Notes: generated by a model from the sequence alone, not told the origin. Counted from the first letter of the stretch, positions 22,863-62,153 are shown. The stretch is 64,000 bases of DNA from IMGVR_UViG_3300042540_001399:124001-188000; one strand, 5' to 3'. Translations and numbers: made by a program.

Positions 22863-23142
22863 AATGGGTTTTAATAAAAGATTTTTAAGTCAAAAAGGTA
22901 TTCTAAATAACTTGGATAACATAATGAAGTATTTAGACGCCGATGCGGTATATCTTACAGATGAGTTTTCAAGGAACGTTTATAAAATTTACAATTCAGC
23001 TGGATCAGAAACCGAAGTCAGAAAAAAAATAGAGCAATTATTGTCTGAAGAAAAAAAATATTAAAAAAATGTAAAACTTTGTTTTTTATATTTGAATTTT
23101 TTTGAAAAATTTGTTATTATTTTATTGAATAAAAAAAATTAT

Positions 23143-42233: not shown

Positions 42234-42281
42234 AAAATGGTTTACTATCTATTGTTAGATATAAACAATAAAATTAAAAAA

Positions 42282-44693: not shown

Positions 44694-45011
44694 ATGTTAA
44701 GACACCAAAACCCAATTCAGATCAATTCTACAACAACAGGATTTGCTTCACCAGCGGAAACATACGTTGACAAACGATTAGATCTAAATGACTTGATTGT
44801 GAAAGATCACTACACAACATTTTATTTTAGATATTCAGGACCATCAGTCTTTGGAATCAATCAAGGTGATACAATAGTAATTGATCGAACTGAGAATCCA
44901 AAAGATGGGGATTTGGTAATCTTAACTGATAAGAATCATTTCAAACTTCGAGAGTTCAAAGGACAAAAAAACTTATGGGGAAAAGTAACATGGGTATTAA
45001 AGAAAATGTAA
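44694..45011 (+). CDS. umuD: UmuD-like (S24) protein, short and degenerate
   Basis: GFASPA...LDLNDL...SGPS...GDTIVIDR; directly upstream of umuC; start moved to 44694. Confidence 0.8.
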   Translation: MLRHQNPIQINSTTTGFASPAETYVDKRLDLNDLIVKDHYTTFYFRYSGPSVFGINQGDTIVIDRTENPKDGDLVILTDKNHFKLREFKGQKNLWGKVTWVLKKM

Positions 45012-46207
45012 AAAAGATTGGAATAATTGATTGTAACAACTTCTATGTTAGTTGTGAAAGATTATTTAATCCTGAATCTATTGGAAGACCAACCGTTGTA
45101 TTATCAAACAATGACGGATGTGTAATTGCCAGATCACAAGAAGCAAAAGACCTTGGAATTAAAATGGGGGAACCATTCTTTAAGAGTCGAGAGTTCATGG
45201 ACCAACATAGATTTTGTGTATACTCATCAAACTACAACCTGTATGGTGATATGTCAGATAGGGTTATGAAAGTAATCTCGGAGTTTGGAAATGATATTGA
45301 GGTATATTCAATTGATGAAGCGTTTGTTGATTTTTCAAACATACCTTTAGAAGATCTCACAGAAACATTAATAGCAATTAAAGAAGAAGTTAGAAAGAAA
45401 GTTGGAATTCCTGTATCAATTGGTGTTGGCCCAAACAAAACTTTAGCTAAACTAACATCCTTTTTAGCTAAACAACAGCTAAACTATAATGGTGTATGTT
45501 CATATTGGGACTTACCAAACTTTAGAAATATGTCTTATGGGATTAATGTTGATGAGGTTTGGGGTATTGGTAGAAAGTGGGCAAAAAAACTAAAAAACAT
45601 TGGGGTAGAATCAGTAGGTCAGTTTATTAACACAAACGAATATACTGTTAGAAAGTTGATGAATATCAATGGAGTAAAAACTCAATTGGAGTTAAAAGAA
45701 ATGTATTGTTTTTTAATTCAAAAGAAGTCCAAACCAAAAAAAAATATTGCATCTACTCGTTCTTTTGGAAAAGATGTACAGGACTTTGATCAACTGGGTG
45801 AAGCGATGTATACATACATTAAAAACGGTGTGAAGAAATTAAGTCAAAACAAGTTGTTTGCAAATAAAGTAACTATATTTGTTTCAGGAAATTATCATAA
45901 AGGTGATAAGTATTACCATTCTAAAACAATCAAACTTCAAAATCCAACTAGAGATCCTGACCTTATTTGGTCACAGATTCACGAACAATATAAAGTTCTT
46001 TGTGACAAATCTGAAAAGTATAAAAAGTGTGGAATAGTATTTAATGAACTTACTCCTGATACAATTATCCAAACTTCTTTATTTAGTGACGATGTTAAAG
46101 TTGTAAACGCCCCACAGAATGAAAACCATGAGTGGGAAATGAAACAAGACTATATTACTCAAAAGTACACAACATCATGGAATGAGTTACCACTTGTTTT
46201 TGTTTGA
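44990..46207 (+). CDS. umuC: Y-family DNA polymerase V catalytic subunit
   Basis: DCNNFYVSCER, SNNDGC, YSIDEAF and STRSFG; C-terminal YTTSWNEL. Confidence 0.93.
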   Translation: MGIKENVKKIGIIDCNNFYVSCERLFNPESIGRPTVVLSNNDGCVIARSQEAKDLGIKMGEPFFKSREFMDQHRFCVYSSNYNLYGDMSDRVMKVISEFGNDIEVYSIDEAFVDFSNIPLEDLTETLIAIKEEVRKKVGIPVSIGVGPNKTLAKLTSFLAKQQLNYNGVCSYWDLPNFRNMSYGINVDEVWGIGRKWAKKLKNIGVESVGQFINTNEYTVRKLMNINGVKTQLELKEMYCFLIQKKSKPKKNIASTRSFGKDVQDFDQLGEAMYTYIKNGVKKLSQNKLFANKVTIFVSGNYHKGDKYYHSKTIKLQNPTRDPDLIWSQIHEQYKVLCDKSEKYKKCGIVFNELTPDTIIQTSLFSDDVKVVNAPQNENHEWEMKQDYITQKYTTSWNELPLVFV

Positions 46208-47166: not shown

Positions 47167-47416
47167 TTTTTGAAACATTCTTGTTTTTTAATTTTTTATT
47201 CTTATCTTTGTCAAACTTATGGAAACACAATTTGAAGATTTAGAAAAAAAAATACGTGAAAAATTTGCTGAAAGACAAAAAAATGTCCCTAGAGTTGTTG
47301 ACCGTTATTTAAGAATCAAATTCAAACAAAAACTTAAACAGTTTACAGGAATAAAACTGAAATAACAAAACCCCACCATCTTGTGGGGTTTTTTATTTAC
47401 TCTAATATTTATCATT

Positions 47417-48304
47417 ATGGGATTAAATGAATCAATATATAGAATAATTAGAGAAGAAACTGAAACCGATAAAAATATTGATGGTGGTAAATTAAAAGTT
47501 TGTTCTCGTAACCCAATTACAGGTTTTTATAGAGATGGATACTGTAGAACAGGTGATGATGATAAAGGTAGTCACACGGTATGTTCTAAGGTGACAAAAG
47601 AATTTCTTAAATTTACAAAGTCACAGGGAAATAATCTTGATATGTTACAACCTGGTGACAAGTGGTGTTTGTGTGCAAAAAGATGGGAAGAAGCAAATGA
47701 AAATGGGGTAGCTCCAAAAATTATCAGAAGTTCCACCAATATTAAAACTTTAGATATTATTAATAGTGTAGACGAAGAATTGGATGAATATGCAAGAACC
47801 TTAAAAAATGCTAGAAGACAAGGTGTTGGTATAAGATTTCCACAATCCGCAATCAAAAGTAATCCAAGTAGATTTAGACCTTCAGTTAGAAAATCAATTT
47901 CAGAAATCTACGACAACTTTAGCTTATTAAGAAGATTAAATAGATCAATTGATGACACAACGATAAAAAGGTTAGTAAAACAAAAAATGTATGACCTTGA
48001 ACCCACTGAATATAATTCCAAATATGGTTACGCGGATGATGTTATTTTTTATGTTACTGATGAATTTATCAAACCTTCAGATGATCCACAATACAGTAAA
48101 ATTTACGATATTTTATACGAATATATTAGAATGAATTTTTCTAATATCATTTATAATTATTGGACGGAAAATCAGTTGGAAAATGATGACGAGTTATATG
48201 AAAACAAAGAAATAACAGAAAGATGTTGGAAGGGATACACTCAAAAAGGTATGAAAACTATGTTTGGTAAAAAGTATCCTAATTGTGTAAAAATAAAGAA
48301 ATGA
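47417..48304 (+). CDS. Modular protein: leader, DUF2237, basic peptide, LRR-motif helical module and CWKGY peptide
   Basis: TGFYRDGYC...HTVC...PGDKWCLCA; C-terminal RCWKGY...PNCVK; start moved to 47417. Confidence 0.75.
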   Translation: MGLNESIYRIIREETETDKNIDGGKLKVCSRNPITGFYRDGYCRTGDDDKGSHTVCSKVTKEFLKFTKSQGNNLDMLQPGDKWCLCAKRWEEANENGVAPKIIRSSTNIKTLDIINSVDEELDEYARTLKNARRQGVGIRFPQSAIKSNPSRFRPSVRKSISEIYDNFSLLRRLNRSIDDTTIKRLVKQKMYDLEPTEYNSKYGYADDVIFYVTDEFIKPSDDPQYSKIYDILYEYIRMNFSNIIYNYWTENQLENDDELYENKEITERCWKGYTQKGMKTMFGKKYPNCVKIKK

Positions 48305-48305
48305 A

Positions 48306-48716
48306 ATGAACCTACAAGAAAACATACAAAGAATCAAAGAAATGATGAAAATAAATCATTCATTTTTGAACGAATCGCAAAGTTTAGGAGTTACCAAAAT
48401 TTTGGGTAGACCATTCCAATTAGTTAAAACTGAAGTACCTTACAAATTTGAAATCCAAGATAACAAAAATGACATGATTAAAATGCAAATAACCGCACCT
48501 AATGGTTCTTTTATTAATATAGATGAAGTTGACCATGTTTTGGAAGAAACTGACGGTGGTGGAAAAAAATTGATTGGTTATAATTTCAAGGGTAAGAGCG
48601 GAACTGTAAAGTTGATAGATGTTCCAAATGTTAAAAGAATTATTGAGTTTGTTGATAATTCAGAAAAAAAATCAATAACAATTTCTTTTGTGACATTCGA
48701 AAAAGTACTTGAATAA
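48306..48716 (+). CDS. MNLQE-leader hypothetical protein
   Basis: Leader repeat followed by an unrelated body. Confidence 0.7.
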   Translation: MNLQENIQRIKEMMKINHSFLNESQSLGVTKILGRPFQLVKTEVPYKFEIQDNKNDMIKMQITAPNGSFINIDEVDHVLEETDGGGKKLIGYNFKGKSGTVKLIDVPNVKRIIEFVDNSEKKSITISFVTFEKVLE

Positions 48717-49198
48717 TGAACCTACAAGAAAACATACAAAGGATAAAAGAAATGATGGGAATAATAGTTGAAAATTACTATGACCCAAAAAAGTTGTATG
48801 TTGACATGGGTGGAGTTTTATTCAAAAAAATGGGTGCCGATGAAGGTGGATCAGGTAATGAAACTGATTATATAGGGAGCGAATTATGGGAAAGTATTAA
48901 AAAATATTACCCAATAATTCTTACTTCCACAGGATCCAAAAATATAGAAAATTCAGAAAAAATAAAAACCAAACAAGTTCAAGACTATTTAAACCCAATT
49001 CCAAAAATTGAATTTGTTGTCTTTGGGGCTGATAAAAAAACTTTTGCCACCACAACTCAAGACGATTTAGTTTATCCAAATATTTTAATAGATGATTCTG
49101 AAACAAACATAAACGGATGGGTAAACAATGGAGGTATTGGAATACTTCATAAAAATAATCAAACAACTTTGGAACAATTAAAAAGTTATATCAAATGA
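48716..49198 (+). CDS. MNLQE-leader HAD/5'(3')-deoxyribonucleotidase-like protein
   Basis: LYVDMGGV, ILTS, KK and ILIDD...GGIGILH. Confidence 0.7.
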   Translation: MNLQENIQRIKEMMGIIVENYYDPKKLYVDMGGVLFKKMGADEGGSGNETDYIGSELWESIKKYYPIILTSTGSKNIENSEKIKTKQVQDYLNPIPKIEFVVFGADKKTFATTTQDDLVYPNILIDDSETNINGWVNNGGIGILHKNNQTTLEQLKSYIK

Positions 49199-49950
49199 AC
49201 CTACAAGAAAACATACCGGTACATATAAAAAGAAGAATTCATTTAATTGATAAGGTAATAGATAATTTGTTACCCAATATGTATCCGTGTGATTATAATT
49301 CTTATGACCATTTTGTGGAAGGAGTATTAGATGAAATTAGATGGTTTTTAATTGATGTAGAAGAATTACAACGTATTGAAAGATCGGATATTGAAAACTA
49401 CATTCTTGATTACAAATATGATGAATTAACTGAATACTTCAATGAAAGGTGTATTGTTTTAAAAAATGATAAACTACAAGAAAACATAAGAAGACTTTCA
49501 AGAGAAAATTCACTAAAGAATGATTTGATGAATCTAATTGATAATGTTGGTTTAAAAAAAGCGTCAAAGGCTGTGGGAGGGATGGTTAGATTATTAAAAA
49601 TATTAGATCTTGATCAACAAGAAATTAATAATTTTATTTACCAGTATCTAAAAGAAGAGTTTTATCCTGATTATAATTGGGGACCTGAAATACATGATTT
49701 TTATAAAAAAGAAATTGAACAGTATGGTATATATGATTTTTTGATTAATGATGATCCGGCATATTCATATTTAGGTGAGTGGGATGGATATGAATATCTA
49801 TACACACTATCAATTGGTAAACTTGTCAGGGATGAACTTACAAAACTGTTTGGGGATAAGTGGATTCCAATTTTTAAGAAATGGTTTGAAGAAAACTCAG
49901 GTCTTGAAGTAAGAGAAATAGACTTAAATAATAAATTTTTAGTGTATTGA
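49195..49950 (+). CDS. MNLQE-leader two-module protein (RR/YPC module and KAVGG module)
   Basis: Internal second leader KLQENIRRLSRE. Confidence 0.7.
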   Translation: MNLQENIPVHIKRRIHLIDKVIDNLLPNMYPCDYNSYDHFVEGVLDEIRWFLIDVEELQRIERSDIENYILDYKYDELTEYFNERCIVLKNDKLQENIRRLSRENSLKNDLMNLIDNVGLKKASKAVGGMVRLLKILDLDQQEINNFIYQYLKEEFYPDYNWGPEIHDFYKKEIEQYGIYDFLINDDPAYSYLGEWDGYEYLYTLSIGKLVRDELTKLFGDKWIPIFKKWFEENSGLEVREIDLNNKFLVY

Positions 49951-50297
49951 TTGAGGTGAACAAAAAAGAATTTATAAAAAGACTATTAAGGGAAAATAAT
50001 TCAAATCCAATTAATCCAATTTTAAGAAGATTGGATGTCGTTGATTGGTTGGTTGAGTTTTCAGTAAGAGAAATAGAAAGACAATATAATGGTATATGTA
50101 AAGTAAGAACCCCTGAAAACTTTTTGGAAATTGTAATAGAAAAGACTGGGGATGGAATGTATTGGGATTATTTTTCTGACACACTAGATGATGATTCAGA
50201 AGAGTGGGCGGAAATGTATAGATTCATATCCATATATGTGTATAATAAATTTGGTGATAAGTTAAGAGAACATTTTCACACACAGTGTGGAGATTAA
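49947..50297 (+). CDS. LRR-motif helical module protein
   Basis: NPILRRLD...C...C; exact start uncertain. Confidence 0.6.
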   Translation: MIEVNKKEFIKRLLRENNSNPINPILRRLDVVDWLVEFSVREIERQYNGICKVRTPENFLEIVIEKTGDGMYWDYFSDTLDDDSEEWAEMYRFISIYVYNKFGDKLREHFHTQCGD

Positions 50298-50311
50298 CAT
50301 AATTATATAAT

Positions 50312-51094
50312 ATGAACCTACAGGAAAACATATTAAGAATTAAACAAATGATGGGACTTGTTACAGAAGTTACTAATCCATACAAAGTTGAATGGTTGGA
50401 ACCTACACAAGAATACTTTACACAAGAGTTAAGTGAGTTATTGGGCAATCCTATTAGGTTTACAGACAAAGAGTTTTTCAACCCTGAAAACTATGATACG
50501 GTTTATAACATTATGCCACACACATTCAAAACGATTGCTGAATTTTCTAAAGGTGAATATGTGGAAGGCGAAGATAAAATTAAGGACATACTTCTAAATC
50601 AAAATATAATATCTCTTTTAAAAGAAGAAGAAAGATGGAATGAATTGAAAAACATTTTAATGAATGACCCGCAATCAATCCAAGAAGGTTATGATTTCTT
50701 CAGTCGTGGTCAAATGACGATATGGAAAGGAACTAACCCTGAAACAGGTGAACATATTGATAATGTAAACAACACTGATTACATGGGTGAATTAACAAGT
50801 TTTCTTGAACCATTAAAAAAAACCGTATCTTCCAAAATGTCATCACATTTGAAAAAAGTTGGTGACGGAGAAGGTAATAAAGATTTACACGCTTTTGCAG
50901 GAAACATCGACCAATATAGAGAATTTGCAAAGAAAAGTGAAACAAGAAAATTACCAGCACCATTTGTTGTTAAATACTACACAAAGAAAAATGATAAAGA
51001 TTATGTTTTAATAGGTGGATTCAAAAGAAGTTCAATCGCATTACAAATGGGTATTGAACCAATAAAAGTTTGGTTAATAGATTTAACAATATGA
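50312..51094 (+). CDS. MNLQE-leader protein with C-terminal ParB/Srx-like motif
   Basis: LPAPFV...LIGGFKRSSIA. Confidence 0.55.
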   Translation: MNLQENILRIKQMMGLVTEVTNPYKVEWLEPTQEYFTQELSELLGNPIRFTDKEFFNPENYDTVYNIMPHTFKTIAEFSKGEYVEGEDKIKDILLNQNIISLLKEEERWNELKNILMNDPQSIQEGYDFFSRGQMTIWKGTNPETGEHIDNVNNTDYMGELTSFLEPLKKTVSSKMSSHLKKVGDGEGNKDLHAFAGNIDQYREFAKKSETRKLPAPFVVKYYTKKNDKDYVLIGGFKRSSIALQMGIEPIKVWLIDLTI

Positions 51095-51840
51095 ACCTAC
51101 AAGAAAACATACAAAGGATTAAACAAATGATGGGGATCATTAACGAGAATATAGATGATGTTCTTGACAAAATGAGCCGAGGTGAAGAATTGTCACAGGA
51201 AGATAAAAATAAAATGTCAGTATTTCAAAAACATCTTTTTTCAGGAAAAAAAGAAAATGATTTCAAATATCACAGAGTATCTGAGTTAAATATTGCAGAA
51301 CCTAATTCAGAAAATCATGTAAATGAATCACAAATTCTTGTACACTACGATTCTAATACTAATATCAAACCAGAATACATGGTAAAAAAAATTGCACTTA
51401 TTTTAAATAAATCAAACATTGATTGTGTAGTTGGGTATTCTTTTAGATTGTTTACATTTGCCAATGGGTATTTTGTTAAGGTAAATGAGTACCAAGTCGA
51501 AAACGCAATTTATGTTTTGAATAAAAACGGGTTTAGTACGGAAATGAATCCAATGTATGATCTTTCAAATAACTATGACACAAAAAGTAACCGAGAAGAA
51601 AAACTACAAAACTTTTCTGAAAATTCAGATATAATAATTTTGAGTGACTCTGAAATTTATCAAAATTTAAATCTTACTGATACACAATTTAATGATAGAT
51701 TAGAAAAACTGTTAAAAAAATTTGGTATAAATAACTTCTTTATAACAAAAAATAAAATAACCATTTCTGATAAATCAAAAATTGACGATGTGATTAATTA
51801 TTTGAATACCAAAGGATACAACACAAGAAGATCAAGATAA
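51091..51840 (+). CDS. MNLQE-leader hypothetical protein
   Basis: True start at 51091 (ATGA overlap with previous stop). Confidence 0.7.
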   Translation: MNLQENIQRIKQMMGIINENIDDVLDKMSRGEELSQEDKNKMSVFQKHLFSGKKENDFKYHRVSELNIAEPNSENHVNESQILVHYDSNTNIKPEYMVKKIALILNKSNIDCVVGYSFRLFTFANGYFVKVNEYQVENAIYVLNKNGFSTEMNPMYDLSNNYDTKSNREEKLQNFSENSDIIILSDSEIYQNLNLTDTQFNDRLEKLLKKFGINNFFITKNKITISDKSKIDDVINYLNTKGYNTRRSR

Positions 51841-51841
51841 T

Positions 51842-52249
51842 ATGAATTTACAAGAAAACATATCAAGGATTAAACAAATGATGGGACTTCTTACAGAAGG
51901 ACTTCATGACACATATTGGCAAAATGAAGATGGTGACAAAATAACTCTAATTGATTTATTAAATGCAACACAAGACATACCTGTAGAAGAATTTTCCGTA
52001 GAAGAATTAAAACCGCATCTATTAACTTGGGATGGGGATGAAGATGAGGTTAAAAAAATAGAAAGTGCCAATTTACAATACCCAATATTAATATTCGTAA
52101 ATGACGATGGTGAATTTATATCAATTATAGATGGTCATCACCGAGCACAAAAAGCGGTGAGAAAAGGGTTAGAAACAATTAAGGCGAAGGTAATACCAAT
52201 TAATTCTTTACCTAAAAACATAAGAAGAGTATTTTCACATATGAACTAA
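51842..52249 (+). CDS. MNLQE-leader ParB/Sulfiredoxin-like protein
   Basis: ANLQYPILI...IIDGHHRAQKA. Confidence 0.8.
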   Translation: MNLQENISRIKQMMGLLTEGLHDTYWQNEDGDKITLIDLLNATQDIPVEEFSVEELKPHLLTWDGDEDEVKKIESANLQYPILIFVNDDGEFISIIDGHHRAQKAVRKGLETIKAKVIPINSLPKNIRRVFSHMN

Positions 52250-52250
52250 T

Positions 52251-53531
52251 ATGAACCTACAAGAATCCATAAGAAGAATATTAAGGGAAGATTTGTTAAA
52301 TAAATCAAAATTCTTTCTAAGAAGAATTAATTTAGATGAGGTTAAAAAATTACTTCCAATCAACGCAGAACAAGTACATGGTGAAACAAAAAGTTATGAG
52401 CAATTCAAGTATGAATTAACTTTAAGAGCCGTGGAGGCAATTATGTGGAATGATTATGAACTCGGGTGGGAAGATCTACCAGAACAAGAGGAAATAGAAT
52501 TTGTTAATGAAGTTTCCAACATGTTTAATAAAACAATCAAAAAGTTATATAATTCTTATAGTGGAAGAATATTAAGGGAAGAAGATTATTCTCCGGCGGG
52601 TAAAGAAATAATACCAAATAAAATTGTGATCCACAAGTCCAATCCGATCTTCAGAAATAAGATAATGGAAAATGGTCTTAAAGTAAGGGCAGGAGAATGT
52701 TACAAAATATATGTTGGTTATGGTGTTAAGTGTAAACCTGCAATTTTTGCAACCAACTCAACGAACAAAAGAGCATGGTTTGATTCAACATACGACGATG
52801 ATATATGGGAAATAAATACAGAAATGATTCCTGATGTAAAGTGGTATAAAGATAGACACTTTGAGTCAAGGTCAAAACATATTGTTACGTTTCAAGACAT
52901 ACCAAAAGAAGCAATAACTTTAAAATATGAAGGAAGTGGAAGTGGAGATGTAGAAAAGTGGGATAAAGATTCGCCAAACATAGTTAGAGAATCCCAAATA
53001 GACCCTTATCTTCTAAGAAGATTTCATGAGTTCGACGACACTTTCAAATTGGTATCATCAAATGTTTATCCATGTGATTTCAGACATCCACAACATTATT
53101 GGAATTACACGATAGAAAGAGTACTGGAAGCTATTTATTTTAATTTTTTCTATGAAACTAAATCCGAATTAAATTGGGAGTCCCTTTCTGATGAAATTCT
53201 TTATCTTCTAAATAGAACATATTATGATGAATTAGTTTCAGACTGGGAATCCAAGTGTAATAATAATATTCATGAAGATTTTTCACCTGAGTTTTTAAGA
53301 AGAATAACTATAATTGATACGTTAATTGACGCAACCCTTTCTTCTATGTACCCATGTGAATATAGTTCTGAAAAAGCTTTTCTTCGTGGTTTATACGACG
53401 AATTATATTGGTCATTTATAGGGGAAGACTTAAAAATTATTGACTATTCAGATATTATTGATTTTATAGAAGAAAACAGAAAAGAAGACATATATGATTA
53501 TTGGGACGAATATTGTGTTCGATTATCATAA
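52251..53531 (+). CDS. Four-module protein: LRR module, ADP-ribosyltransferase-like domain, two more LRR modules
   Basis: VIHKS...IMENGL...IFAT...DIPKEAI; modules separated by ILREE, VRE and IHE. Confidence 0.6.
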   Translation: MNLQESIRRILREDLLNKSKFFLRRINLDEVKKLLPINAEQVHGETKSYEQFKYELTLRAVEAIMWNDYELGWEDLPEQEEIEFVNEVSNMFNKTIKKLYNSYSGRILREEDYSPAGKEIIPNKIVIHKSNPIFRNKIMENGLKVRAGECYKIYVGYGVKCKPAIFATNSTNKRAWFDSTYDDDIWEINTEMIPDVKWYKDRHFESRSKHIVTFQDIPKEAITLKYEGSGSGDVEKWDKDSPNIVRESQIDPYLLRRFHEFDDTFKLVSSNVYPCDFRHPQHYWNYTIERVLEAIYFNFFYETKSELNWESLSDEILYLLNRTYYDELVSDWESKCNNNIHEDFSPEFLRRITIIDTLIDATLSSMYPCEYSSEKAFLRGLYDELYWSFIGEDLKIIDYSDIIDFIEENRKEDIYDYWDEYCVRLS

Positions 53532-53532
53532 T

Positions 53533-53610
53533 TAACTATGGTTTTCAATTACTCGGTTCATAGTCCTTCACTTCGTTCGGAATTCACCTCATAATTTAAT
53601 ACCATAGTTA
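53533..53610 (-). other. Hairpin with three tandem G.A pairs and a C-GAA-G triloop
   Basis: Minus strand: TAACTATGGT...GA-GGT-GA-AT-TCC-GA-AC-GAA-GT-GA-A-GGA-CT-AT-GA-ACC-GA...ACCATAGTTA. Confidence 0.7.
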
Positions 53611-53650
53611 TATTTATTATACATAAAGGATAACAAATCAAAAGACAACA

Positions 53651-53974
53651 ATGTCACTTAAAAAAATAATTAGAAAAGTATTGATTCAAGAATCGGGAAA
53701 CATAGATCCTTACATACTTCGAAGACTTGATTTAGATAAGTTCAATGATCTCTTAGATAAAGGAAAAGTATATATGTTTTATGAATCCAATTCATTAGAA
53801 GAATTCAAATGGAAGTTAGTTACGGCAACATTAGAAAACTATCATTACTACAAGTATGAAACTGATATAGATACAAGTGATGGATATTTCGATCAAACAA
53901 TACAAAGTCTTATCAACTTATTTGAGCCCAAGTTAGAAACTATTTATAACAGATTAAAAAATGAAAGAGGATGA
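53651..53974 (+). CDS. Leader plus LRR-motif module
   Basis: KKIIRKVLIQE; IDPYILRRLD. Confidence 0.65.
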   Translation: MSLKKIIRKVLIQESGNIDPYILRRLDLDKFNDLLDKGKVYMFYESNSLEEFKWKLVTATLENYHYYKYETDIDTSDGYFDQTIQSLINLFEPKLETIYNRLKNERG

Positions 53975-54594
53975 ACAAACAATTAAATCCATTTTTGTTA
54001 CGTAGAGTTGATCCTAAAGTGTTAGACGCCGAATTTGAGGATTGTTTAGATACTGCCACAAACATGTACAACAGGGGAAAAGACAAAAGTTCGGTATCAT
54101 TACCTCAGTTTAGAAATAGAGTCATATCCATGTTGATAGACTCAATTCACTATGATATACATAGCTCTGTTCCAGAAGAACTTCAGTGGTATGATGATGT
54201 CTTTTATATGTTAAAAGATTATTATGGGGGTAAGATTAAAAAAAGATTAGATCAATTAAATTCCAAAACTATAAATGAATCCAAGTTACAAATTTATATG
54301 TTAAGAAGAATAGATGTTGTTGAACATTACCTTAACAATTTAAGTTCAAAAGATGTTTGTATACACTGGTCAGACGATGAGGCTTTAGAATATTCTAGTC
54401 AAATACTTTCAGACATGTCAAGAATTATTATTGATGAACTACACTATGTTGATTCAGAATCATATGTAGACAAGTATGATGAAATATATCAATTTTTAAT
54501 TGATCTTGATTATCCGAAAAGAATAGTAGACTTCTTTTATGATTCATTAAAAACTTGTGAAGATAGACATAGATATAAATTTAGAAAACCATAA
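53971..54594 (+). CDS. Two LRR-motif modules
   Basis: NPFLLRRVD and INE-SKLQIYMLRRID. Confidence 0.65.
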   Translation: MNKQLNPFLLRRVDPKVLDAEFEDCLDTATNMYNRGKDKSSVSLPQFRNRVISMLIDSIHYDIHSSVPEELQWYDDVFYMLKDYYGGKIKKRLDQLNSKTINESKLQIYMLRRIDVVEHYLNNLSSKDVCIHWSDDEALEYSSQILSDMSRIIIDELHYVDSESYVDKYDEIYQFLIDLDYPKRIVDFFYDSLKTCEDRHRYKFRKP

Positions 54595-54676
54595 AATAAT
54601 ATAACACATTCACTCATTACAAAGGGGACCTCAATCGGTTCCCTTTTTCATTCACTCATATGTTATACTATTTTAT
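54591..54676 (-). other. Second tandem G.A hairpin
   Basis: 19-bp outer stem (two G.T); ATGAGTGAAT paired with ATGAGTGAAT; inner AAAGGG/CCCTTT and ACC/GGT. Confidence 0.7.
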
Positions 54677-55796
54677 AAAACTATAATCCCCCCATTTAGT
54701 TAAGTCCTAATATATTGTCCCCCCATTTAAGTTGACCAATGATTACACATTTTGCGTAACACATTTTGTATAATGTTATGGTACAACTATCAAGACAACT
54801 TTGTACCAAAGTTATATTTTAGTGTTGTACTTGTATTATATTTTGGTGTGGTGATTAGTTACTAAATGAATGTGTATATGAAAAGGGTATAAACATACCC
54901 ACTTATTACCACTTATTAGAAGTTATTACCACTTTACTATGTGTTATTAGTTGTGTAGATTTTAGTGGTCAGGATGTTGAAAAACCCACTAAAGTGGTCG
55001 TTGAAGTTATCTATTTAATGATCTATAAGTGATCTACTAACGACATAAATGTCTGTCCACGGCAACAGTACCATTAATATATGTTTTTCGCTGGAGAATA
55101 GACATAGTGAAAAAAGTGGTTCTGTAGGGGTCAAGAAGGGGGATTTTTTAGGTCTGTAGATAGCAACAGGTACAATTTCGGTGGTAGAAAGTGGGAAGTA
55201 TAGAGTGGGGAAAAGTGGTAGAAAACCCGTAAAGAGATTGTGTCGTGTGTAACGCTCGACTGACATTTTGACAAAAACAAGTTTTTTAACATAATTATTT
55301 ATTAACAATTCCCCCTGGTGATGGAGATATTAAAAGTTTTCAACAAAGTAATTGACAAAAGTGGTGATACCATAACCCTGACATATTGTCACCAAAACTA
55401 TTCTGGTACATGTGTGTATAAAGAACATAACTTGGTTGGTAAAAATAAACCTATCAGACAAAGGTTCTACACCCTTGAGTCATCAGACATGGGGGATGTA
55501 TTAGAATATCTATTTACACAGGGACATATTAAAGATGGGGACTTCAATACCATTGGTCCCCAACTACAAGACTATTCATTAGGTCTTATATATGATCATC
55601 CATTTGATCAATAATATAACGACGAATAAAGTTAGTTATATTTGACGTGGGGAAGTAGTCCAAAAAGAAAGCACACACTGTAAGACCAAACAGAAATAAC
55701 AACGTGATTACAACATAGACCATAAGAAACATTTCCATAACAGAATAATAACACACACCATTCACCTTTTCAAGATCATTAGTATATTTATTATTA

Positions 55797-55920
55797 GAAG
55801 TTCATTTTCCCCACAGTAGGGAATTAGTTGTTCAAGACCCAGGCGGTCTGTAAAGTTCAAGATGAAGTTGACAACATAATTTTCTTAAGGATCCCTATTC
55901 GGTGATGGGGAATTTTTTAT
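55797..55920 (+). ncRNA. Candidate structured late sRNA
   Basis: TATTTAT at 55785; stems TTCCC/GGGAA, AATTAGTTG-TCAA/TTGA-CAAC-TAATT and AGACC/GGTCT; terminal hairpin with T tract. Confidence 0.4.
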
Positions 55921-56010
55921 GCTCCCTTATTTTTTTTATAAGGCATCCTGCCTCTGATTGAGCTCCACGGGTTGTTCCCCCGAGCCCGACTTAACCTTAT
56001 CATCAGTGTC
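55921..56010 (-). ncRNA. Candidate structured sRNA behind a host-sigma promoter
   Basis: TACCTTTG on the minus strand at 56015-56022; stems CTGAT/ATCAG, GGGCTC/GAGCTC, GGG/CCC and GGCA/TGCC. Confidence 0.45.
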
Positions 56011-56347
56011 AATACAAAGGTACGGGATTAATTTGACACTACCAAATTTTCCCCCATGTTTATTTGATCAAAAGTTATTAACACCACTATAGTCGTTTAC
56101 TAAGTTATCAACATGACAGTGTGTCACATGGGGGACCAATAGAGTTTGGCATACCCCTACCATAGGGGGATCCACAAGAATTACCCCCTCCCCCCTCCCG
56201 TATGCCCCCTTATATGACATATTGTCAGGGGAAAAAGGGGGGTCAATCCCAAATATAACATATTCGTAAAAAAAATTCTGGAAAAATTTTTGGGAAAATT
56301 TGGAAACTATACTATCCCATATTATACAGTAAAGTATATTTATCAAT

Positions 56348-56653
56348 ATGGAAGAAGGTTTAAGATGGTTTTTAAGAAGAACAAATGATCCTGAAATAAT
56401 AAATCACATCGAGGAACTTGTGGAAGAGGGTTTTGATTATGAAGACGTTTGTGATTACATCGGTAGGAAAAGAGAATATGTTAGGGAAATAGTTCGTGGG
56501 TCAACTATTACTTTTATAAATTCTTATGATGGATTAGATAAACTAAATGAGTCAAGTGTGTTAAGGATTTATAATTTTATTATGTCCAGATTTCTTGAGT
56601 TAATTACGGACCATTATGACTCTAATATCGAAGATTGTGATGGATTCTTATAA
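56348..56653 (+). CDS. LRR-motif module protein
   Basis: WFLRRTND...VCDY...EDC; TATTTAT at 56337. Confidence 0.65.
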   Translation: MEEGLRWFLRRTNDPEIINHIEELVEEGFDYEDVCDYIGRKREYVREIVRGSTITFINSYDGLDKLNESSVLRIYNFIMSRFLELITDHYDSNIEDCDGFL

Positions 56654-56715
56654 TGTGTAAAGTAAAACCCTTACAATCTGTAAAGTGAAACCCTTATAAT
56701 CTGTAAAGTCGACCC
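56647..56715 (+). repeat. Three tandem 23-bp repeats
   Basis: CTTAYAATSTGTAAAGTnnAcCC; TGTAAAGT at 56656, 56679 and 56702. Confidence 0.85.
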
Positions 56716-56812
56716 CTTTTTAATTTACCTTCAAATACTAAAAAAAATTTCTGGAAAAATTTTTCAAAAATATAGGTTTTAGACATTCTACATATTTATT
56801 GGAAAATACATT

Positions 56813-57526
56813 ATGGAACTAAATAGATTTAAACAATTATTGGAATCAAGCTTGGGGGATGTTAGACCACTTATATCTGAACAAGAAGTAAAAGATTTTT
56901 CAGCTCAGATTTTTGAAGAACTAAAAACAAACGGATTTACAATATCAAATGTAAACGCCAATCTTGTTCAAGCGTCAAAGGCGTCACTTACACTTTTATT
57001 TCAAGTACAGGTTGATAAGCAACAACAGAAATATTATAGACTAATTGAAATAGATTATATGTTGGCGGTTGATCCAAATAATGAAGGGATTTCACCTGAG
57101 TTATTAAAAACATTTACAGGTGTGGGTGCCAGTGGGGAGTACATTGGTCCTGTTTATTCTAAACCAACAGAAGAAGATAAAGAGTTTTTAAAAACTTTAT
57201 CCAACAAAGATAGGAACATGATGACCAATAGTGGACCTACAGAAAAAAGAGCAGGTTTTAAAATGTGGAAATCTAATCTTGGGGGTCTTGATCTTACGAC
57301 TTTGGGACAATCAAAAGAAACCACAAGTATATACAAGTACATGAAAGATTTTTATGCTTTGGGTGTTACCGCACAAAAATATCAAAACTTTAATAGTGCT
57401 AATTTTGCAGGTCAAGTTAAGATTGTTGGTCAGGAATTAAAATCGGCAGCCGCTCCTATGGTTGACAAGGCTAAACAAGGAATACAAAATCTGGCATCTA
57501 AGGTCAAAGGAAAACTACAACGTTAA
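56813..57526 (+). CDS. MExNRFKQLLES-leader hypothetical protein
   Basis: 24-aa leader nearly identical to 60624; bodies unrelated. Confidence 0.7.
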   Translation: MELNRFKQLLESSLGDVRPLISEQEVKDFSAQIFEELKTNGFTISNVNANLVQASKASLTLLFQVQVDKQQQKYYRLIEIDYMLAVDPNNEGISPELLKTFTGVGASGEYIGPVYSKPTEEDKEFLKTLSNKDRNMMTNSGPTEKRAGFKMWKSNLGGLDLTTLGQSKETTSIYKYMKDFYALGVTAQKYQNFNSANFAGQVKIVGQELKSAAAPMVDKAKQGIQNLASKVKGKLQR

Positions 57527-57636
57527 AAATTAATAAAAATAGAAACCCTACCTCATCGGTGGGGTTTTTTGTTATTGACAGTAGTATTTATTTTTGTTAA
57601 TATTATTTAACAAATAAACTTATAATTTAACTTACC

Positions 57637-57807
57637 ATGAAAAGTTTAACTTTGATGGGTCTTTTGTTAAGTTTTTCGTTGATGGTATCATCATGTAATT
57701 CTAAAAAAGAAGAAACAACTACAAACAATGTTTCTACTGAAAATGTTGGAACTGATAGTACTACAACCGAAAACGTATCAAATGATTCCTTGACTGTTAT
57801 TAAGTAA
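57637..57807 (+). CDS. 56-aa lipoprotein (below the ORF-track cutoff)
   Basis: MKSLTLMGLLLSFSLMVSS-CNSKKEE followed by a T/N/S-rich tail; flanked by terminators. Confidence 0.7.
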   Translation: MKSLTLMGLLLSFSLMVSSCNSKKEETTTNNVSTENVGTDSTTTENVSNDSLTVIK

Positions 57808-57886
57808 AAAATAATTTATAATCTGTGAATTATTTATCCCCCACTTTTATCGGTGGGGTTTTTTGTTTTACATTATATTTATTGAT

Positions 57887-58213
57887 ATGAAAATTATTAT
57901 AACGGAAAGACAATATAATAAAGTAATTGTTCTAAGAAGAATTAATGAAATAATGCATGAAGCCTTGTTAATGATTAGGGATGATGGGGCTTTTTATGGT
58001 GACGTAAACTTTTGTTATCATTACCCCACATTTGAAGGTTTTATGGAAGATATGGTTGAGGAAATTATTCGCAATTATGAATATTTTAATAATTTCGACA
58101 TATCGGATTTTATCTATGATGAAGTTGGTTTTGAAAACTTTATTAACATATTGATTGATGTTCACGGTGATGAGATTAGAGAGTTCTATAACTCAAAAAC
58201 AGAAGATTGTTAA
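57887..58213 (+). CDS. Leader plus LRR-motif module
   Basis: MKIIITERQ...VLRRI...C...EDC; TATTTAT at 57876. Confidence 0.7.
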   Translation: MKIIITERQYNKVIVLRRINEIMHEALLMIRDDGAFYGDVNFCYHYPTFEGFMEDMVEEIIRNYEYFNNFDISDFIYDEVGFENFINILIDVHGDEIREFYNSKTEDC

Positions 58214-58214
58214 C

Positions 58215-58544
58215 ATGAAAATCATTATCACAGAAAATCAACTATTTCTTATTAGACGGCTACAACAATTTGTTGATCTTGTTGAAGATCAGATTGATGG
58301 GTACGAAAGAAATGAAGATGGTGCTTGGTGGTGTAAATATAATACCCCCGATTCTTTTTTAGAAAATTTTAGAGATAGATGTATCGAGGAGTTTGTTAAT
58401 AACAATTGGGAATTCTTTCATGATAACAGTGAAAATGGGGGATCTAATATGGATATAAGTTTATTATATAATATTGTTGATCAAGATTACGGGAACTATA
58501 TTAAAAATCTTTTTGTTCGTAAGTGTAATTATTATCGTTATTAG
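58215..58544 (+). CDS. Leader plus LRR-motif module
   Basis: MKIIITENQ..LIRRL...WC...KC; start moved to 58215. Confidence 0.7.
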   Translation: MKIIITENQLFLIRRLQQFVDLVEDQIDGYERNEDGAWWCKYNTPDSFLENFRDRCIEEFVNNNWEFFHDNSENGGSNMDISLLYNIVDQDYGNYIKNLFVRKCNYYRY

Positions 58545-58564
58545 TAAAATTCTTCCTTTTTATT

Positions 58565-58630
58565 GGGGGCCGGATACCGCGGGTCCCGACTTCGTCGGAA
58601 AAATCGACCGACCGAACCCTTCGGGTTTTT
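58565..58630. other. GC-rich intergenic element with two GAA/TTC triloop hairpins
   Basis: CCGAC-TTC-GTCGG and AACCC-TTC-GGGTT (C-GAA-G on the minus strand); GGGGCC/GGTCCC. Confidence 0.6.
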
Positions 58631-58737
58631 AATAGTTCATATTATATCTTACTTAAGTGAATCTTTCAGAAAAAGGTGGTTTCCCTACTTGACTTAATGG
58701 TATTTACTGTTTATAATTTTATACACAAAAAAAAGTT

Positions 58738-59172
58738 ATGACAATTAAACAAGCACTGAAACAAAAAAATAAACTGATCAAACAGATCGGTGAAAATACA
58801 AAGTTGATGCAAGAGTACAACTCAATTGAAGTTGGAAATGAAAGACCATATAGCTCAAACGAACTATTGGTTGAAATAACTAAAGACACAAAGGAGTTGG
58901 CAAAGTTAAAAACAAAAATTCACATTGCAAACACACCAGTGTTAGAAGACATCTTTTTTATGTCGGAGTTAAAATCAATGACTCAATCACTTAAAAAAAT
59001 GGATTGTACCGAAGGGAAGTCAAATAGAGATAGGTACCGATTGGAAAGTGAAAGTATTAAAACCTCAGAAATATCTTTGGTTAAACGAAATGAAACAATC
59101 AAAGAGTTGGAAGCTCGAATTGAAGAAATCCAAGATCGATTGGATATATTCAACGCAACCACTCAAATTTAA
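58738..59172 (+). CDS. DUF6847/DIP1984-like coiled-coil protein
   Basis: MTIKQALKQKNKL...YNS...LKTKIHIAN...IQDRLDIFNATT. Confidence 0.6.
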   Translation: MTIKQALKQKNKLIKQIGENTKLMQEYNSIEVGNERPYSSNELLVEITKDTKELAKLKTKIHIANTPVLEDIFFMSELKSMTQSLKKMDCTEGKSNRDRYRLESESIKTSEISLVKRNETIKELEARIEEIQDRLDIFNATTQI

Positions 59173-59347
59173 TATGGTTTGTGGGTAGGGTCAAAATGAT
59201 ATGTGTTCTACAATTAGAGACTGAATAGTCAGATAATTGATCGTGATAAAGTAATGGTCCCAAACTCATTATTCAAAGACTCAAAAGTCATTTGATTAAA
59301 ATTTAAAACTCTTGATGACATAATTTTAATCCTCGAAACAAACTATA
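59173..59347 (+). ncRNA. Candidate 175-nt structured RNA in 3' UTR
   Basis: UAUGGUUUGU/ACAAACUAUA and AGGGUCAAAAU..UAUGU/ACAUAAUUUUAAUCCU long-range stems; terminator at 59351-59378. Confidence 0.6.
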
Positions 59348-59400
59348 TGGAACCCTCACAGAAATGTGGGGGTTTTTTAGTTGTAAGATATTTATTTCAT

Positions 59401-60021
59401 ATGAAAATCATTGTTACCGAATCACAGTTAAGACGATACCTTGTTAAAGAATCTACAGAAGAATCTGTTGATTTGGAAATGAATCAATCAATAGACACAA
59501 CAATAAATGAACTACACCCCAACGTTATTCCAAAATTCCAAAAATTAGTAAACGCGTGGAAAGCTAAGGGATACAAATTTAAAATTACCGACGGATTTAG
59601 AACATTTGATGAACAAGAAAACGAATTCCAAAAAGGAACTAGTAAAGCTCGTGGTGGTCTTGGGATTCACAATTATGGTCATGCGATTGATGTTTATATG
59701 TGGAATGGAAAAAATTGGGATAAACCATCTGACGCAATGTTAAAAGTTGCCGTGAACAATGGTTTTGAATCATACGGTCTTTCTTGGGGTTGGGATTTTT
59801 ATCACGTACAATATACAAAAGAATTCACAGGTCAAAAAGGTGGTGATGCTAATTTCATAAAAAAATACGGAAAACAATTAATCGATTCTTATTCCAAAAT
59901 TTCATCTGAAGACAAAAAGAAAATGAAAAAAAATATTGACGCTAAATTTAAACAGGGGAATGGCGGTTACAAAGATTTAATTAATAAATGGTTGGACTTA
60001 TATAGCCCCTTCAAAGATTAA
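59401..60021 (+). CDS. Leader-bearing M15 family peptidoglycan peptidase
   Basis: GFRTFDEQ, HNYGHAID and WDFYHVQ; MKIIVTESQL; start moved to 59401. Confidence 0.8.
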   Translation: MKIIVTESQLRRYLVKESTEESVDLEMNQSIDTTINELHPNVIPKFQKLVNAWKAKGYKFKITDGFRTFDEQENEFQKGTSKARGGLGIHNYGHAIDVYMWNGKNWDKPSDAMLKVAVNNGFESYGLSWGWDFYHVQYTKEFTGQKGGDANFIKKYGKQLIDSYSKISSEDKKKMKKNIDAKFKQGNGGYKDLINKWLDLYSPFKD

Positions 60022-60268
60022 AATTTTTTTGACAAATATTTTTTTTATCATTAATTTTAAATTTGAAGATGAAAAATTTAGGATTGTTTATTGCAGGAAT
60101 TGTTACCGCAATTTTGGCTTTGTTATATTTACCACCATTTATAATTTATCTTATTGGTTGTTTTCAGATTGGGTCATGGATTGGATCTTATATTCAAAAC
60201 AAAAGATTTGAAGATTAATTAATAATTGGTAACTTATACTGTTTTTATTTCACAAATATTTATTTTAT

Positions 60269-60568
60269 ATGGTGAATATACCCACATTTTTACTCAGAAG
60301 ATTTGACGGTCACAAGATAGAAAAGACGATGAAAAAAATTGCCGGTCAAGTTTATTTTGGTACTGACAACAAACAAGAATTCAAAGATGAACTTGTTTAT
60401 AGAACTCTTTCTAATTATTTTTGGACAAAATATAATTTCGATATTACACAACTCAGTGACGATGAATTGATATCTATGAATGAATTAATTTTTAAAATCT
60501 TTGAACCACTTATGAATGTATATTATTCAGGTCTTAAAAAAAATTACCCGAGTCCAAAAACAAATTAA
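60269..60568 (+). CDS. LRR-motif module protein
   Basis: IPTFLLRRFD; TATTTAT at 60257. Confidence 0.65.
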   Translation: MVNIPTFLLRRFDGHKIEKTMKKIAGQVYFGTDNKQEFKDELVYRTLSNYFWTKYNFDITQLSDDELISMNELIFKIFEPLMNVYYSGLKKNYPSPKTN

Positions 60569-60623
60569 TTTTATTTTATTAAAAAATTTTTGAAATTCAT
60601 AAATATTTATAATAAAAATATTT

Positions 60624-61130
60624 ATGGAAACAAATAGATTTAAACAACTTTTAGAATCAACTCTTGGAAATGTTAAACCATTAATTTCTGAACAAAGAGT
60701 AAACCAATCATCAATTCAAACAGTTGAACAATATGTTGTAAAATGTCTTACAGACATTAACAATTTCATTTTAAAAACAAACAAGGAACAAAAGAAAAAT
60801 GTACCAATAATTAAATATACCGTTAAAAGAATGAATGTTGCCGCTGATCCATCATACGGGACAAGACAAACTGTAGAAGTTCCTCAATATACCTTGATGA
60901 TAAACGGAGTACAGGCACCCGCACAATTAGATTTTGGTGTTTATTTAAATAACCCAAATACTTTTTTTAGAATTTGGAAAGATACTTTAGGTAATACAGA
61001 TTGGTTATTGAAAAACATCAAAGATACGCAAATTCTTCCTATAATACAAAATATAGATAAAAAATACTACGATTTATCTTTTAGAGCAACGCAGCAAGGT
61101 AACAAACAATCCCCTGTAAAAAAACCATAA
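60624..61130 (+). CDS. MExNRFKQLLES-leader hypothetical protein
   Basis: Leader shared with 56813. Confidence 0.7.
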   Translation: METNRFKQLLESTLGNVKPLISEQRVNQSSIQTVEQYVVKCLTDINNFILKTNKEQKKNVPIIKYTVKRMNVAADPSYGTRQTVEVPQYTLMINGVQAPAQLDFGVYLNNPNTFFRIWKDTLGNTDWLLKNIKDTQILPIIQNIDKKYYDLSFRATQQGNKQSPVKKP

Positions 61131-62093: not shown

Positions 62094-62153
62094 ACCAAAC
62101 CCCGCGTTAATGTGGGGTTTTATTTTTATGTAATATTTATAAAATAAAAAATT

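Follow-up and report, generated by a model that had tools for sequence, protein, structure and literature searches.

What does a phage do with 16 strongly diverged copies of one small acidic domain, in all of which the same two adjacent arginines are kept? The question is raised by a 64,000-nt window (the whole stretch of DNA analysed here, bases 124,001-188,000 of the 290,887-bp IMG/VR virus contig IMGVR_UViG_3300042540_001399; coordinates are window positions unless marked 'genome'), in which 13 modules of about 95 amino acids (aa) are encoded by 10 genes between 47,909 and 60,550. The best explanation is that the module is a non-enzymatic helical-bundle domain, the most expanded one in a set of accessory proteins that carry leaders and are encoded by a T4-like jumbo phage. 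As to function, we tentatively favor, with a probability of roughly 0.4, that the modules are protease-processed head-internal or ejected proteins, acting as cargo or adaptor domains like the T4 internal proteins and Alt.

In a whole-genome scan, the motif of two hydrophobic residues, RR and a further hydrophobic residue clustered at 47.4-60.6 kb. Every window copy was matched by a hidden Markov model (HMM) built from the modules, with domain E-values of 1e-16 to 1e-26. Genes 47417, 49195, 49947, 53651, 56348, 57887, 58215 and 60269 (named by their start positions) carry one module each, gene 53971 carries two and gene 52251 three, exactly where an earlier sequence-only reading of this DNA had placed them. 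Three extra modules were identified at genome 193,752-194,629, 6 kb past the window end, giving 16 copies in the genome; in the rest of the genome, searched in all frames with the module HMM, no further copy was found and nothing scored better than E 0.09. Below, L002, L004 and L009 are labels of metagenomic contigs, G000 is the analysed genome, and P0010, P0044 and P0133 are metagenomic proteins. The modules and the domains fused to them are as follows.

47417-48304, + strand: DUF2237 + module fusion gene, true start ATG at 47417 (MGLNESIYRIIREE...); homologue P0044 begins at the same Met
about 47471-47767, + strand: DUF2237 domain (Pfam PF09996, E 2.7e-38, 130.9 bits, above the cut-off of 25)
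47909-48193, + strand: module 1 (SLLRRLN...), without the Cys pair, HMM domain E 1e-18, aligned as A1
49207-49482, + strand: module 2, gene 49195-49950, directly behind the leader MNLQENI, HMM E 1e-22
50004-50294, + strand: module 3, gene 49947-50297 (TTG start, ...FIKRLLRENNSNPINPILRRLD), HMM E 7.8e-25, identical to the metagenomic representative P0010
52299-52580, + strand: module 4, first of three in gene 52251-53531, leader MNLQESIRRILRED ahead, HMM E 3.3e-24
52563-53000, + strand: middle domain of gene 52251-53531, predicted ADP-ribosyltransferase fold, ILREE before it and IVRES after it
52992-53276, + strand: module 5 (DPYLLRRFH..YPC..SKC), HMM E 1e-26, the sequence used for the structure model (pLDDT 90.9)
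53277-53528, + strand: module 6 (SPEFLRRIT..YPC..EYC), linker NNIHED ahead, HMM E 4.1e-21
53699-53968, + strand: module 7, gene 53651-53974 (leader MSLKKIIRKVLIQES), HMM E 9.7e-25, TATTTAT at 53611-53617
53980-54279, + strand: module 8, first of two in gene 53971-54594, without leader, HMM E 4.1e-22
54283-54570, + strand: module 9, second in gene 53971-54594, linker TINES (54271-54282) ahead, HMM E 1.1e-16
56357-56638, + strand: module 10, gene 56348-56653, HMM E 4e-21, TATTTAT at 56337-56343
57914-58210, + strand: module 11, gene 57887-58213 (leader MKIIITERQ), HMM E 7.8e-22, terminator 57839-57858 and TATTTAT 57876-57882 upstream
58233-58529, + strand: module 12, gene 58215-58544 (leader MKIIITENQ), HMM E 1.3e-23, orthologues 66-75% identical in L002 and L004
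60275-60550, + strand: module 13, gene 60269-60568 (starts MVNIPTFLLRRFD; no Cys, isoelectric point (pI) 8.1), HMM E 5.4e-26, L004 orthologue 70% identical, TATTTAT at 60257-60263

Gene 47417 is preceded by a terminator (47367-47392) and the heptamer TATTTAT (47406-47412). Module 2 is followed by a leader-like KLQENIRRLSRE (49474-49506) and then by an additional C-terminal region.

The modules are 84-100 aa long, acidic and rich in Tyr and Phe. Asp and Glu make up 21% of their residues against 13.5% in the proteome, and Tyr 7.7% against 4.6%, which bears out the earlier description of units of about 90 residues rich in Tyr, Asp and Glu. The pI lies at 4.1-5.7 in 12 of the 13 window modules and at 8.1 in the remaining one, and net charges run from -2 to -22 per ~95 aa. 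Any two modules share just 11-26% of their residues, and the two adjacent Arg are the sole invariant columns; across 238 aligned modules, metagenomic relatives included, RR reaches 99-100% conservation. What else is conserved in this alignment is a periodic hydrophobic/aromatic core, in particular F37, I81 and Y85, while the acidic residues fall at no conserved positions. A conserved core and a kept RR with otherwise variable acidic surfaces agree with the idea of one scaffold with variable surfaces put forward in the sequence-only reading. A point absent from that reading concerns the RR itself: since it is kept in all paralogues, it argues that they share one common partner or step, and not many.

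Two familiar motifs that the RR might suggest were rejected. Leucine-rich repeats have units of 20-29 aa (LxxLxLxxN/C) that follow one another in tandem and build a solenoid of beta-strands and helices; the present units are ~95 aa long and all-helical, with no match to a Pfam leucine-rich repeat, and 'LRR' here simply reads Leu-Arg-Arg, as had been supposed. A twin-arginine (Tat) signal has S/T-R-R-x-F-L-K at the N-terminus, then a hydrophobic h-region and finally a cleavage site. In the modules, the RR is followed by an acidic amphipathic helix with no hydrophobic stretch, and the motif also occurs internally (residues 254, 348 and 110 of multi-module proteins).

The invariant RR bears directly on the main alternative, which we consider somewhat less likely than head ejection. 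The modules may never enter the virion and may work in the host cytoplasm, in takeover or against defence, each by binding and blocking a different host protein, with the leaders and linkers as structural or recombination elements. Many small T4 early proteins bind host proteins in such a manner, and small, acidic modules with variable surfaces on one scaffold would suit it. An RR kept in all paralogues, however, points to one shared partner and not to many.

AlphaFold2 was run on a 16-sequence module alignment with module 5 as the modelled sequence. The model (mean predicted local distance difference test, pLDDT, 90.9; predicted template modelling score, pTM, 0.81) has four helices (H5-9, H11-23, H33-53 and H62-93), and the module is thus confidently predicted to be a helical bundle. 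Searching this model against PDB with Foldseek returned nothing at E below 2, and the best VIA-align score (Z 6.4) lies inside the noise typical of helical bundles (the tool's own bar is about 13). The C-domain of T4 Rnl2 (Z 6.2) and Ocr (Z 5.3) were rejected as fold relatives on the same ground. Good structural neighbours were limited to unnamed viral proteins, namely an ESM Atlas cluster (template modelling score, TM, 0.70; 100% viral) and a BFVD entry (TM 0.66); an ESM Atlas feature search with the module gave no usable match. Sequence searches of the modules against Pfam, PHROGs, NCBIfam, PADLOC and PDB found nothing significant. The domain thus has no significant match in these described families and is previously undescribed; it is also phage-specific. 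The copy count and the structure prediction that the sequence-only reading had proposed as checks therefore gave 16 copies of a well-modelled bundle outside any known family.

An exhaustive profile search recovered 390 cluster representatives (50% identity) at E <=1e-3, 50 of them at <=1e-10; all 390 are metagenomic and either unnamed or 'hypothetical'. These homologues hold 1-3 modules per protein, with extra domains in some. In a Pfam scan of 60 longer homologues, DUF2237 is the only fusion partner that recurs (2/60); the other partner matches are single-member and non-recurrent, and the repetitive protein P0133 is their suspected source. Arrays also occur on related contigs, with nine modules in 21 kb of L002 and six in L004. 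Together with the 16 genome copies, this substantiates the view of an expanded family.

The acidity of the bundles invites a comparison with DNA mimics. As such, the modules would resemble the DNA backbone with its phosphates and block restriction enzymes or other defence proteins that bind DNA, in the way of Ocr, ArdA and Arn. Like these, they are small, strongly acidic phage proteins, with the low pI of most modules and net charges as low as -22, and T7 Ocr does appear among the fold matches. Its score is far within the helical-bundle noise, however, and one module is basic. In the modules, conservation falls on RR, on aromatics and on a Cys pair instead of on an ordered acidic array; this sets them apart from Ocr, Arn and ArdA, to which they have no significant fold or sequence match. 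The whole proteome is itself acidic, with a median pI of 5.7 and a third of its proteins below pI 5. DNA mimicry is thus very unlikely, and nothing singles out either this role or that of receptor decoys, both of which the sequence-only reading had suggested.

A mid Cys (in PC, IC, VC, FC or WC) together with a C-terminal Cys is present in 8/13 window modules, consistent with the earlier remark that many modules carry both. Among 247 modules of the wider family, both residues occur in 136, a single one in 20 and neither in 91 (Fisher p ~4e-47, uncorrected for relatedness). The mid Cys (YPC motif) sits in the loop after helix 2 and the second Cys at the end of the last helix. Two Cys that form a disulfide or bind one metal together would be expected to co-occur in this way. 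For cytoplasmic binders, a Cys pair that is gained and lost as a unit would be of little use in the reducing cytoplasm.

A few short N-terminal leaders are common to unrelated proteins of this genome and its relatives, and head many genes on related contigs. The leader types and the starts of the genes that carry them are:

MNLQE(N/S)I.RI (MNLQENI.RIK.MMG): seven consecutive genes, starts 48306, 48716, 49195, 50312, 51091, 51842 and 52251
MKIII(T/S)E.Q: 57887, 58215, 59401, 61455, 6482 and 31963
ME.NRFKQLLES..G.V.PLISEQ: 56813 and 60624
MKRIVRLTESDL.RIVRRVI.E: 40718

Leader sequences recur inside proteins ahead of internal modules, for example as ...NLQESIRRILREE... or ...INES.... Within 20 residues before the RR, (L/I)xE is present in 197 of 250 modules (79%), compared with 24-39% in control windows inside modules; for internal modules the figure is 88%, and 105/120 internal linkers carry the motif. 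When a small or polar residue (S, N, T, D, A or G) is required at P1', the frequency is 62% before modules against 6-11% in controls. L or I, which T4 gp21 prefers at P3, stands at this position in 56% of the upstream Glu residues against 19% inside modules, and Ser at P1' of 26% of the upstream Glu. In gene 52251, each domain boundary bears an (L/I)xE-type site. Judged by its sequence, the motif (L/I)-x-E, often followed by Ser, matches T4-type prohead-protease sites; in T4 and in the giant phages alike, prohead proteases recognize X-x-E and cleave behind the Glu (PMC5694885). Such a protease-type motif, strongly enriched before modules and repeated in the putative scaffold described below, speaks against proteins that are never packaged.

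The MNLQE leader is also conserved at the nucleotide level (ATG AAC CTA CAA GAA (AAC/TCC) ATA), while the DNA upstream of it is not. Among its codons are less frequent ones, AAC with a share of 32% for Asn and CTA with 12% for Leu. The first 13 codons of gene 52251, except for the last base, are identical to those of a gene on the unrelated contig L009, where MNLQE leaders lie at 9193, 10001 and 10929. This pattern suggests nucleic-acid-level selection on the leader, or recombination between leaders. Because the leader codons are conserved at synonymous sites, both within the genome and on another contig, the view of leaders as recombination joints fits, and this speaks for the cytoplasmic-binder alternative, as does the lack of a leader on some modules.

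A T4-like head gene block was identified outside the window:

genome 252,234-254,006: large terminase (TerL)
genome 254,243-256,069: portal
genome 257,574-258,290: Peptidase_S77 (gp21-type) prohead protease gene (PF03420 match at 257,724-258,149, E 1.4e-23)
genome 258,639-260,396: putative scaffold, 585 aa, pI 4.3, between the protease and major head protein genes
genome 260,464-262,353: major head protein (MCP), 629 aa, PHROG match

The TerL, portal, Peptidase_S77 and MCP genes are adjacent and in T4 order, so that a protease of the gp21 family is encoded by this phage. The PHROG match of MCP begins at residue 354, and the first ~350 residues form an unexplained N-terminal region starting with MGALLES. 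The putative scaffold is extremely acidic, with D/E-rich repeats. Its C-terminal 160 aa show 74-89% identity over thousands of metagenomic homologues and contain three conserved (L/I)xES sites, as well as ILRRFD or VLRRFD in 116/120 homologues. ILRRFD resembles the LRR-hydrophobic-D helix of the modules. Domain homology between the module and the scaffold C-terminus was rejected, since hhalign aligned just the eight residues of the LRRFD motif. A complex prediction for MCP and the module of gene 60269 scored 0.00, which speaks neither for nor against binding.

Two recognizable domains are fused to modules. The middle domain of the 52251 protein (52563-53000) has no Pfam or PDB sequence match; it shows 54-90% identity among 50%-cluster representatives and is fused to modules, which flank it, in all six homologues. 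Its AlphaFold2 model reached a moderate pLDDT of 63. The top 19 Foldseek matches of this model are all Tpt1/KptA (E 4e-3 to 0.3, best probability 1.0), VIA-align gave Z 7.3/6.9 with nearly all 50 rows being ADP-ribosyltransferases (ARTs), and the next fold neighbours are the DNA-targeting ARTs Scabin, pierisin and DarT. With moderate confidence, this domain is predicted to have an ART fold closest to Tpt1/KptA. The second fusion is that of DUF2237 to the module protein of gene 47417. With its leader in front and a gp21-type protease encoded by the same phage, the ART-fold domain recalls T4 Alt, a packaged and injected ADP-ribosyltransferase processed by gp21 (PMC5694885); the T4 internal proteins, too, lose propeptides to gp21. 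It differs from Alt in that its nearest folds are Tpt1/KptA and nucleic-acid-targeting ARTs, with the model at pLDDT 63, and in that three modules flank it.

These fusions could also be read as regulatory or immunity-like pairs, in which the modules are partner domains that hold fused or neighboring enzymes (ART-fold, DUF2237, peptidases) inactive until needed. The flanking of the ART-fold domain by modules in all six homologues agrees with this, and in immunity-gene arrays, too, small diverged proteins are encoded in tandem. Most module proteins, however, have no enzyme attached or adjacent, and DUF2237 is the sole recurring recognizable partner. This is the least probable of the accounts considered here.

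Leaders are also found on peptidoglycan hydrolases. Three hydrolases have N-terminal leaders, VanY/M15 and, as assigned by orthology, M23 and NlpC/P60; a GH19 + PG_binding endolysin has none:

window 59401-60021; genome 195,278-196,015, 196,301-196,984 and 234,731-235,567: leader-bearing hydrolases and GH19 endolysin

For the favored head-ejection reading, we infer a mechanism of five steps, every one of which is conditional. The module proteins would be made from phage TATTTAT promoters, along with the head genes. They would be taken up into the prohead, with the hydrophobic-LRR-hydrophobic-D helix as a common docking element whose motif ILRRFD is also present in the putative scaffold. The Peptidase_S77 protease would then cut after (L/I)-x-E, which removes leaders and splits multi-module proteins and fused enzymes into ~95-aa units. 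The paired Cys may staple the bundle once the virion is extracellular, and the units may finally be ejected with the DNA and bring their varied acidic surfaces, along with fused enzymes (for instance the ART-fold domain), to bear on host targets. This sequence of events would account jointly for the invariant RR (docking), the pre-module motif, the enzyme fusions and, through an extracellular phase, the Cys pair. The modules may plausibly serve as effectors or against host defences, since the ART-fold fusion and the resemblance to T4 internal-protein loci fit it.

Several observations weigh against head ejection. The upstream motif is absent from 21% of modules, several module genes begin directly at the RR helix, and N-terminal (L/I)xE enrichment is weak genome-wide (19% against 11-16%). 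Leaders and linkers might simply be structural helices or joints left by recombination. The module-scaffold likeness amounts to an 8-residue motif alone (hhalign P 0.02), noticed post hoc. Strongly acidic proteins are not obvious companions of packaged DNA. TATTTAT precedes 90 genes, probably including the DNA polymerase operon, and therefore need not be late-specific.

A more far-reaching version of head ejection, which we consider rather unlikely, would have polyprotein-like arrays cut in the head into at least 16 disulfide-stapled bundles plus enzymes (ART-fold, peptidoglycan hydrolases) that are all injected, with the LRR-hydrophobic-D helix as a universal docking tag that the modules took from the scaffold or have in common with it. 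What the protease sites and the scaffold motif show could equally be claimed for a purely structural role, in which the modules are core, inner-body or charge-balancing filler proteins of the head with no post-ejection function. Large head paralogue families of unknown role do exist in giant phages (PMC5694885). Compact and diverged bundles, enzyme fusions and a copy content that varies between related phages nevertheless suit cargo better than architecture, and a purely structural role is very unlikely.

Among known systems, one close parallel is the T-even internal proteins IPI, IPII and IPIII and their variable locus. T-even internal proteins are diverse defence-countering proteins with only a capsid-targeting sequence in common (PMC3012670). 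Here too, a T4-type head module with a gp21-family protease is accompanied by diverged or unrelated small proteins that share a short leader ending in an (L/I)xE-type site and lie in variable loci; the injected counter-defence role of the T-even proteins (PMC3012670) is only proposed for the modules. The two groups are unrelated in sequence and fold, IPI* being alpha/beta (PMC3012670) in contrast to the helical bundles, and the modules have the motif between domains too, several leader types and 16 paralogues of one domain. For the modules, packaging and cleavage are proposed from the sequence. Contig L009, a related contig that also carries module genes, encodes a GmrSD_N + HNH protein at 13450-14850; GmrSD is the type IV restriction family that is the target of T4 IPI* inhibition, and in L009 it is encoded by the phage-like contig itself.

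Giant-phage head proteins provide a second parallel. SPN3US has a 20-member head paralogue family (family B), as well as paralogues with identical N-terminal propeptides (PMC5694885). Like the SPN3US family and the phiKZ/SPN3US inner-head proteins of PF12699, the modules form a large jumbo-phage family of unknown function with variable copy number, and conserved N-terminal propeptides with protease motifs, as in those head proteins (PMC5694885), are proposed for them too. SPN3US and phiKZ belong to another lineage and use another protease subfamily with another specificity (A/S/G-x-E), and the modules have no Pfam match to PF12699. Virion location has been demonstrated for the SPN3US/phiKZ proteins, while the modules are known as predicted gene products.

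Divergence within the locus was compared at two depths. Between G000 and the syntenic contig L004, module orthologues are 64-75% identical, within the 49-88% of non-module neighbors. In near-identical strains from other lakes, the two module genes at 57,887-58,544 have no substitutions, and the adjacent gene 56,813-57,526 (714 bp) has seven, out of eight that separate lake strains over a 1.8-kb contig. The RNA-library contigs that cover two module genes do not demonstrate transcription. Since orthologue identity is like that of the neighbors and module genes are free of substitutions, the locus is not currently fast-evolving. The ongoing diversification assumed in the sequence-only reading was therefore not borne out; the sequences point instead to paralogues that are old and very diverged and orthologues that are stable, that is, one scaffold with many fixed surfaces. 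Orthologues that do not evolve fast also count against cytoplasmic binders. The location of the module genes, in gene-content-variable islands of small unknown genes, favors such binders. Genes 56813-57526 and 60624-61130 of this region are a paralogous pair with a 25-residue N-terminus in common (ME.NRFKQLLES.LG.V.PLISEQ) and no family match. A 56-aa open reading frame (ORF) at 57637-57807 has a lipoprotein-type signal (LMVSSC), and a similar small ORF occurs at the syntenic place in L004 (7584-7760).

The module genes lie in cassettes in which TATTTAT often directly follows a terminator (a GC-rich hairpin and a T-run). Genome-wide, TATTTAT stands ahead of 90 genes (12.8 would be expected), at a distance of 11-13 or 20-23 nt from the start codon; the TerL, protease, scaffold and MCP genes are among them. 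In the window it occurs at 47406-47412, 53611-53617, 56337-56343, 56793-56799, 57876-57882, 59389-59395, 60257-60263, 60604-60610 and 62134-62140. On this distribution, TATTTAT is a promoter-like element, and its shortest spacing would lead to nearly leaderless mRNAs. Sigma-70-type promoters show no enrichment (82, with 89 expected), and a phage sigma-factor gene is located at ~100 kb. Promoter/stem-loop cassettes (PeSLs) shuffle early genes in T4-type phages. The terminator - TATTTAT - ATG cassettes resemble them, as do the nucleotide-conserved leaders that could drive recombination; they differ in the promoter motif, in a conserved element that reaches into coding sequence, and in that recombination is only hinted at. 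At 56300-60600 in runs X13, X16 and X18, lake contigs break or join at terminator, promoter and leader boundaries, for example 57888 to 58215 (two MKIII leaders joined) or 56697 to 58215 with a 40-nt insert containing TATATTTAT. This hints at cassette-level variation in gene content. As proof of cassette recombination, the joints were rejected as unreliable because their sides are short (21-33 nt).

A 1.75-kb stretch at 54595-56347 has almost no convincing ORF, a higher GC content and many short repeats (TCCCCCCATTTA twice, ACACATTTTG..TA twice and a 24-nt tandem pair), with no Rfam match; it may be regulatory or replication-origin-like. A 33-nt direct repeat (D2) brackets module gene 56348 (56259-56291 and 56732-56764), and three 23-nt tandem copies lie downstream of the stretch, after this gene (56647-56715).

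The virus record, with an estimated completeness of 99%, is that of a freshwater jumbo phage with a T4-type head gene block. The window has a GC content of 31%, with most genes on the + strand, and contains no tRNA, tmRNA or any Rfam family. The host is probably a member of Bacteroidota, because a Por_Secre_tail domain, a sorting domain of the type IX secretion system (T9SS), is encoded at 42,237-43,847 and CHU_C/PKD proteins are encoded on related contigs. Jumbo phages of freshwater Flavobacterium are known (PMC13573597). Near-identical DNA was found in ~18 metagenome runs on lakes or other freshwater that belong to separate studies; together with the thousands of scaffold homologues, this indicates that the lineage is evidently very abundant. 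Megablast and tblastn searches of 50,697 deposited phage genomes gave no match to this phage. It resembles the 'moraphages' (PMC12619734) in genome size, a glutamine synthetase gene and a T4-like core, a likeness that does not establish membership. Auxiliary genes of the window are:

10467-11600: RNA ligase with PHA02142 OB domain
21588-22862: UvrC-like GIY-YIG/RNase H endonuclease
23092-24267: glutamine synthetase
44975-46207: Y-family (ImpB/UmuC) polymerase

Pfam, PHROGs, NCBIfam and PDB all lack the domain, although at least 390 clusters at 50% identity belong to it. Even if the protease reading fails, it is a well-defined, confidently foldable new domain, whose Arg pair and covarying Cys pair suit structural and binding studies. 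If the motif does mark protease sites, (L/I)xE-S plus the LRR helix would be a sequence rule that predicts packaged, injected proteins of these uncultured jumbo phages, and the paradigm of T4 internal proteins and Alt would extend to Bacteroidota phages, with a polyprotein twist. Should the polyprotein-array version hold as well, the entire ejected proteome of an abundant uncultured freshwater lineage would be readable from sequence.

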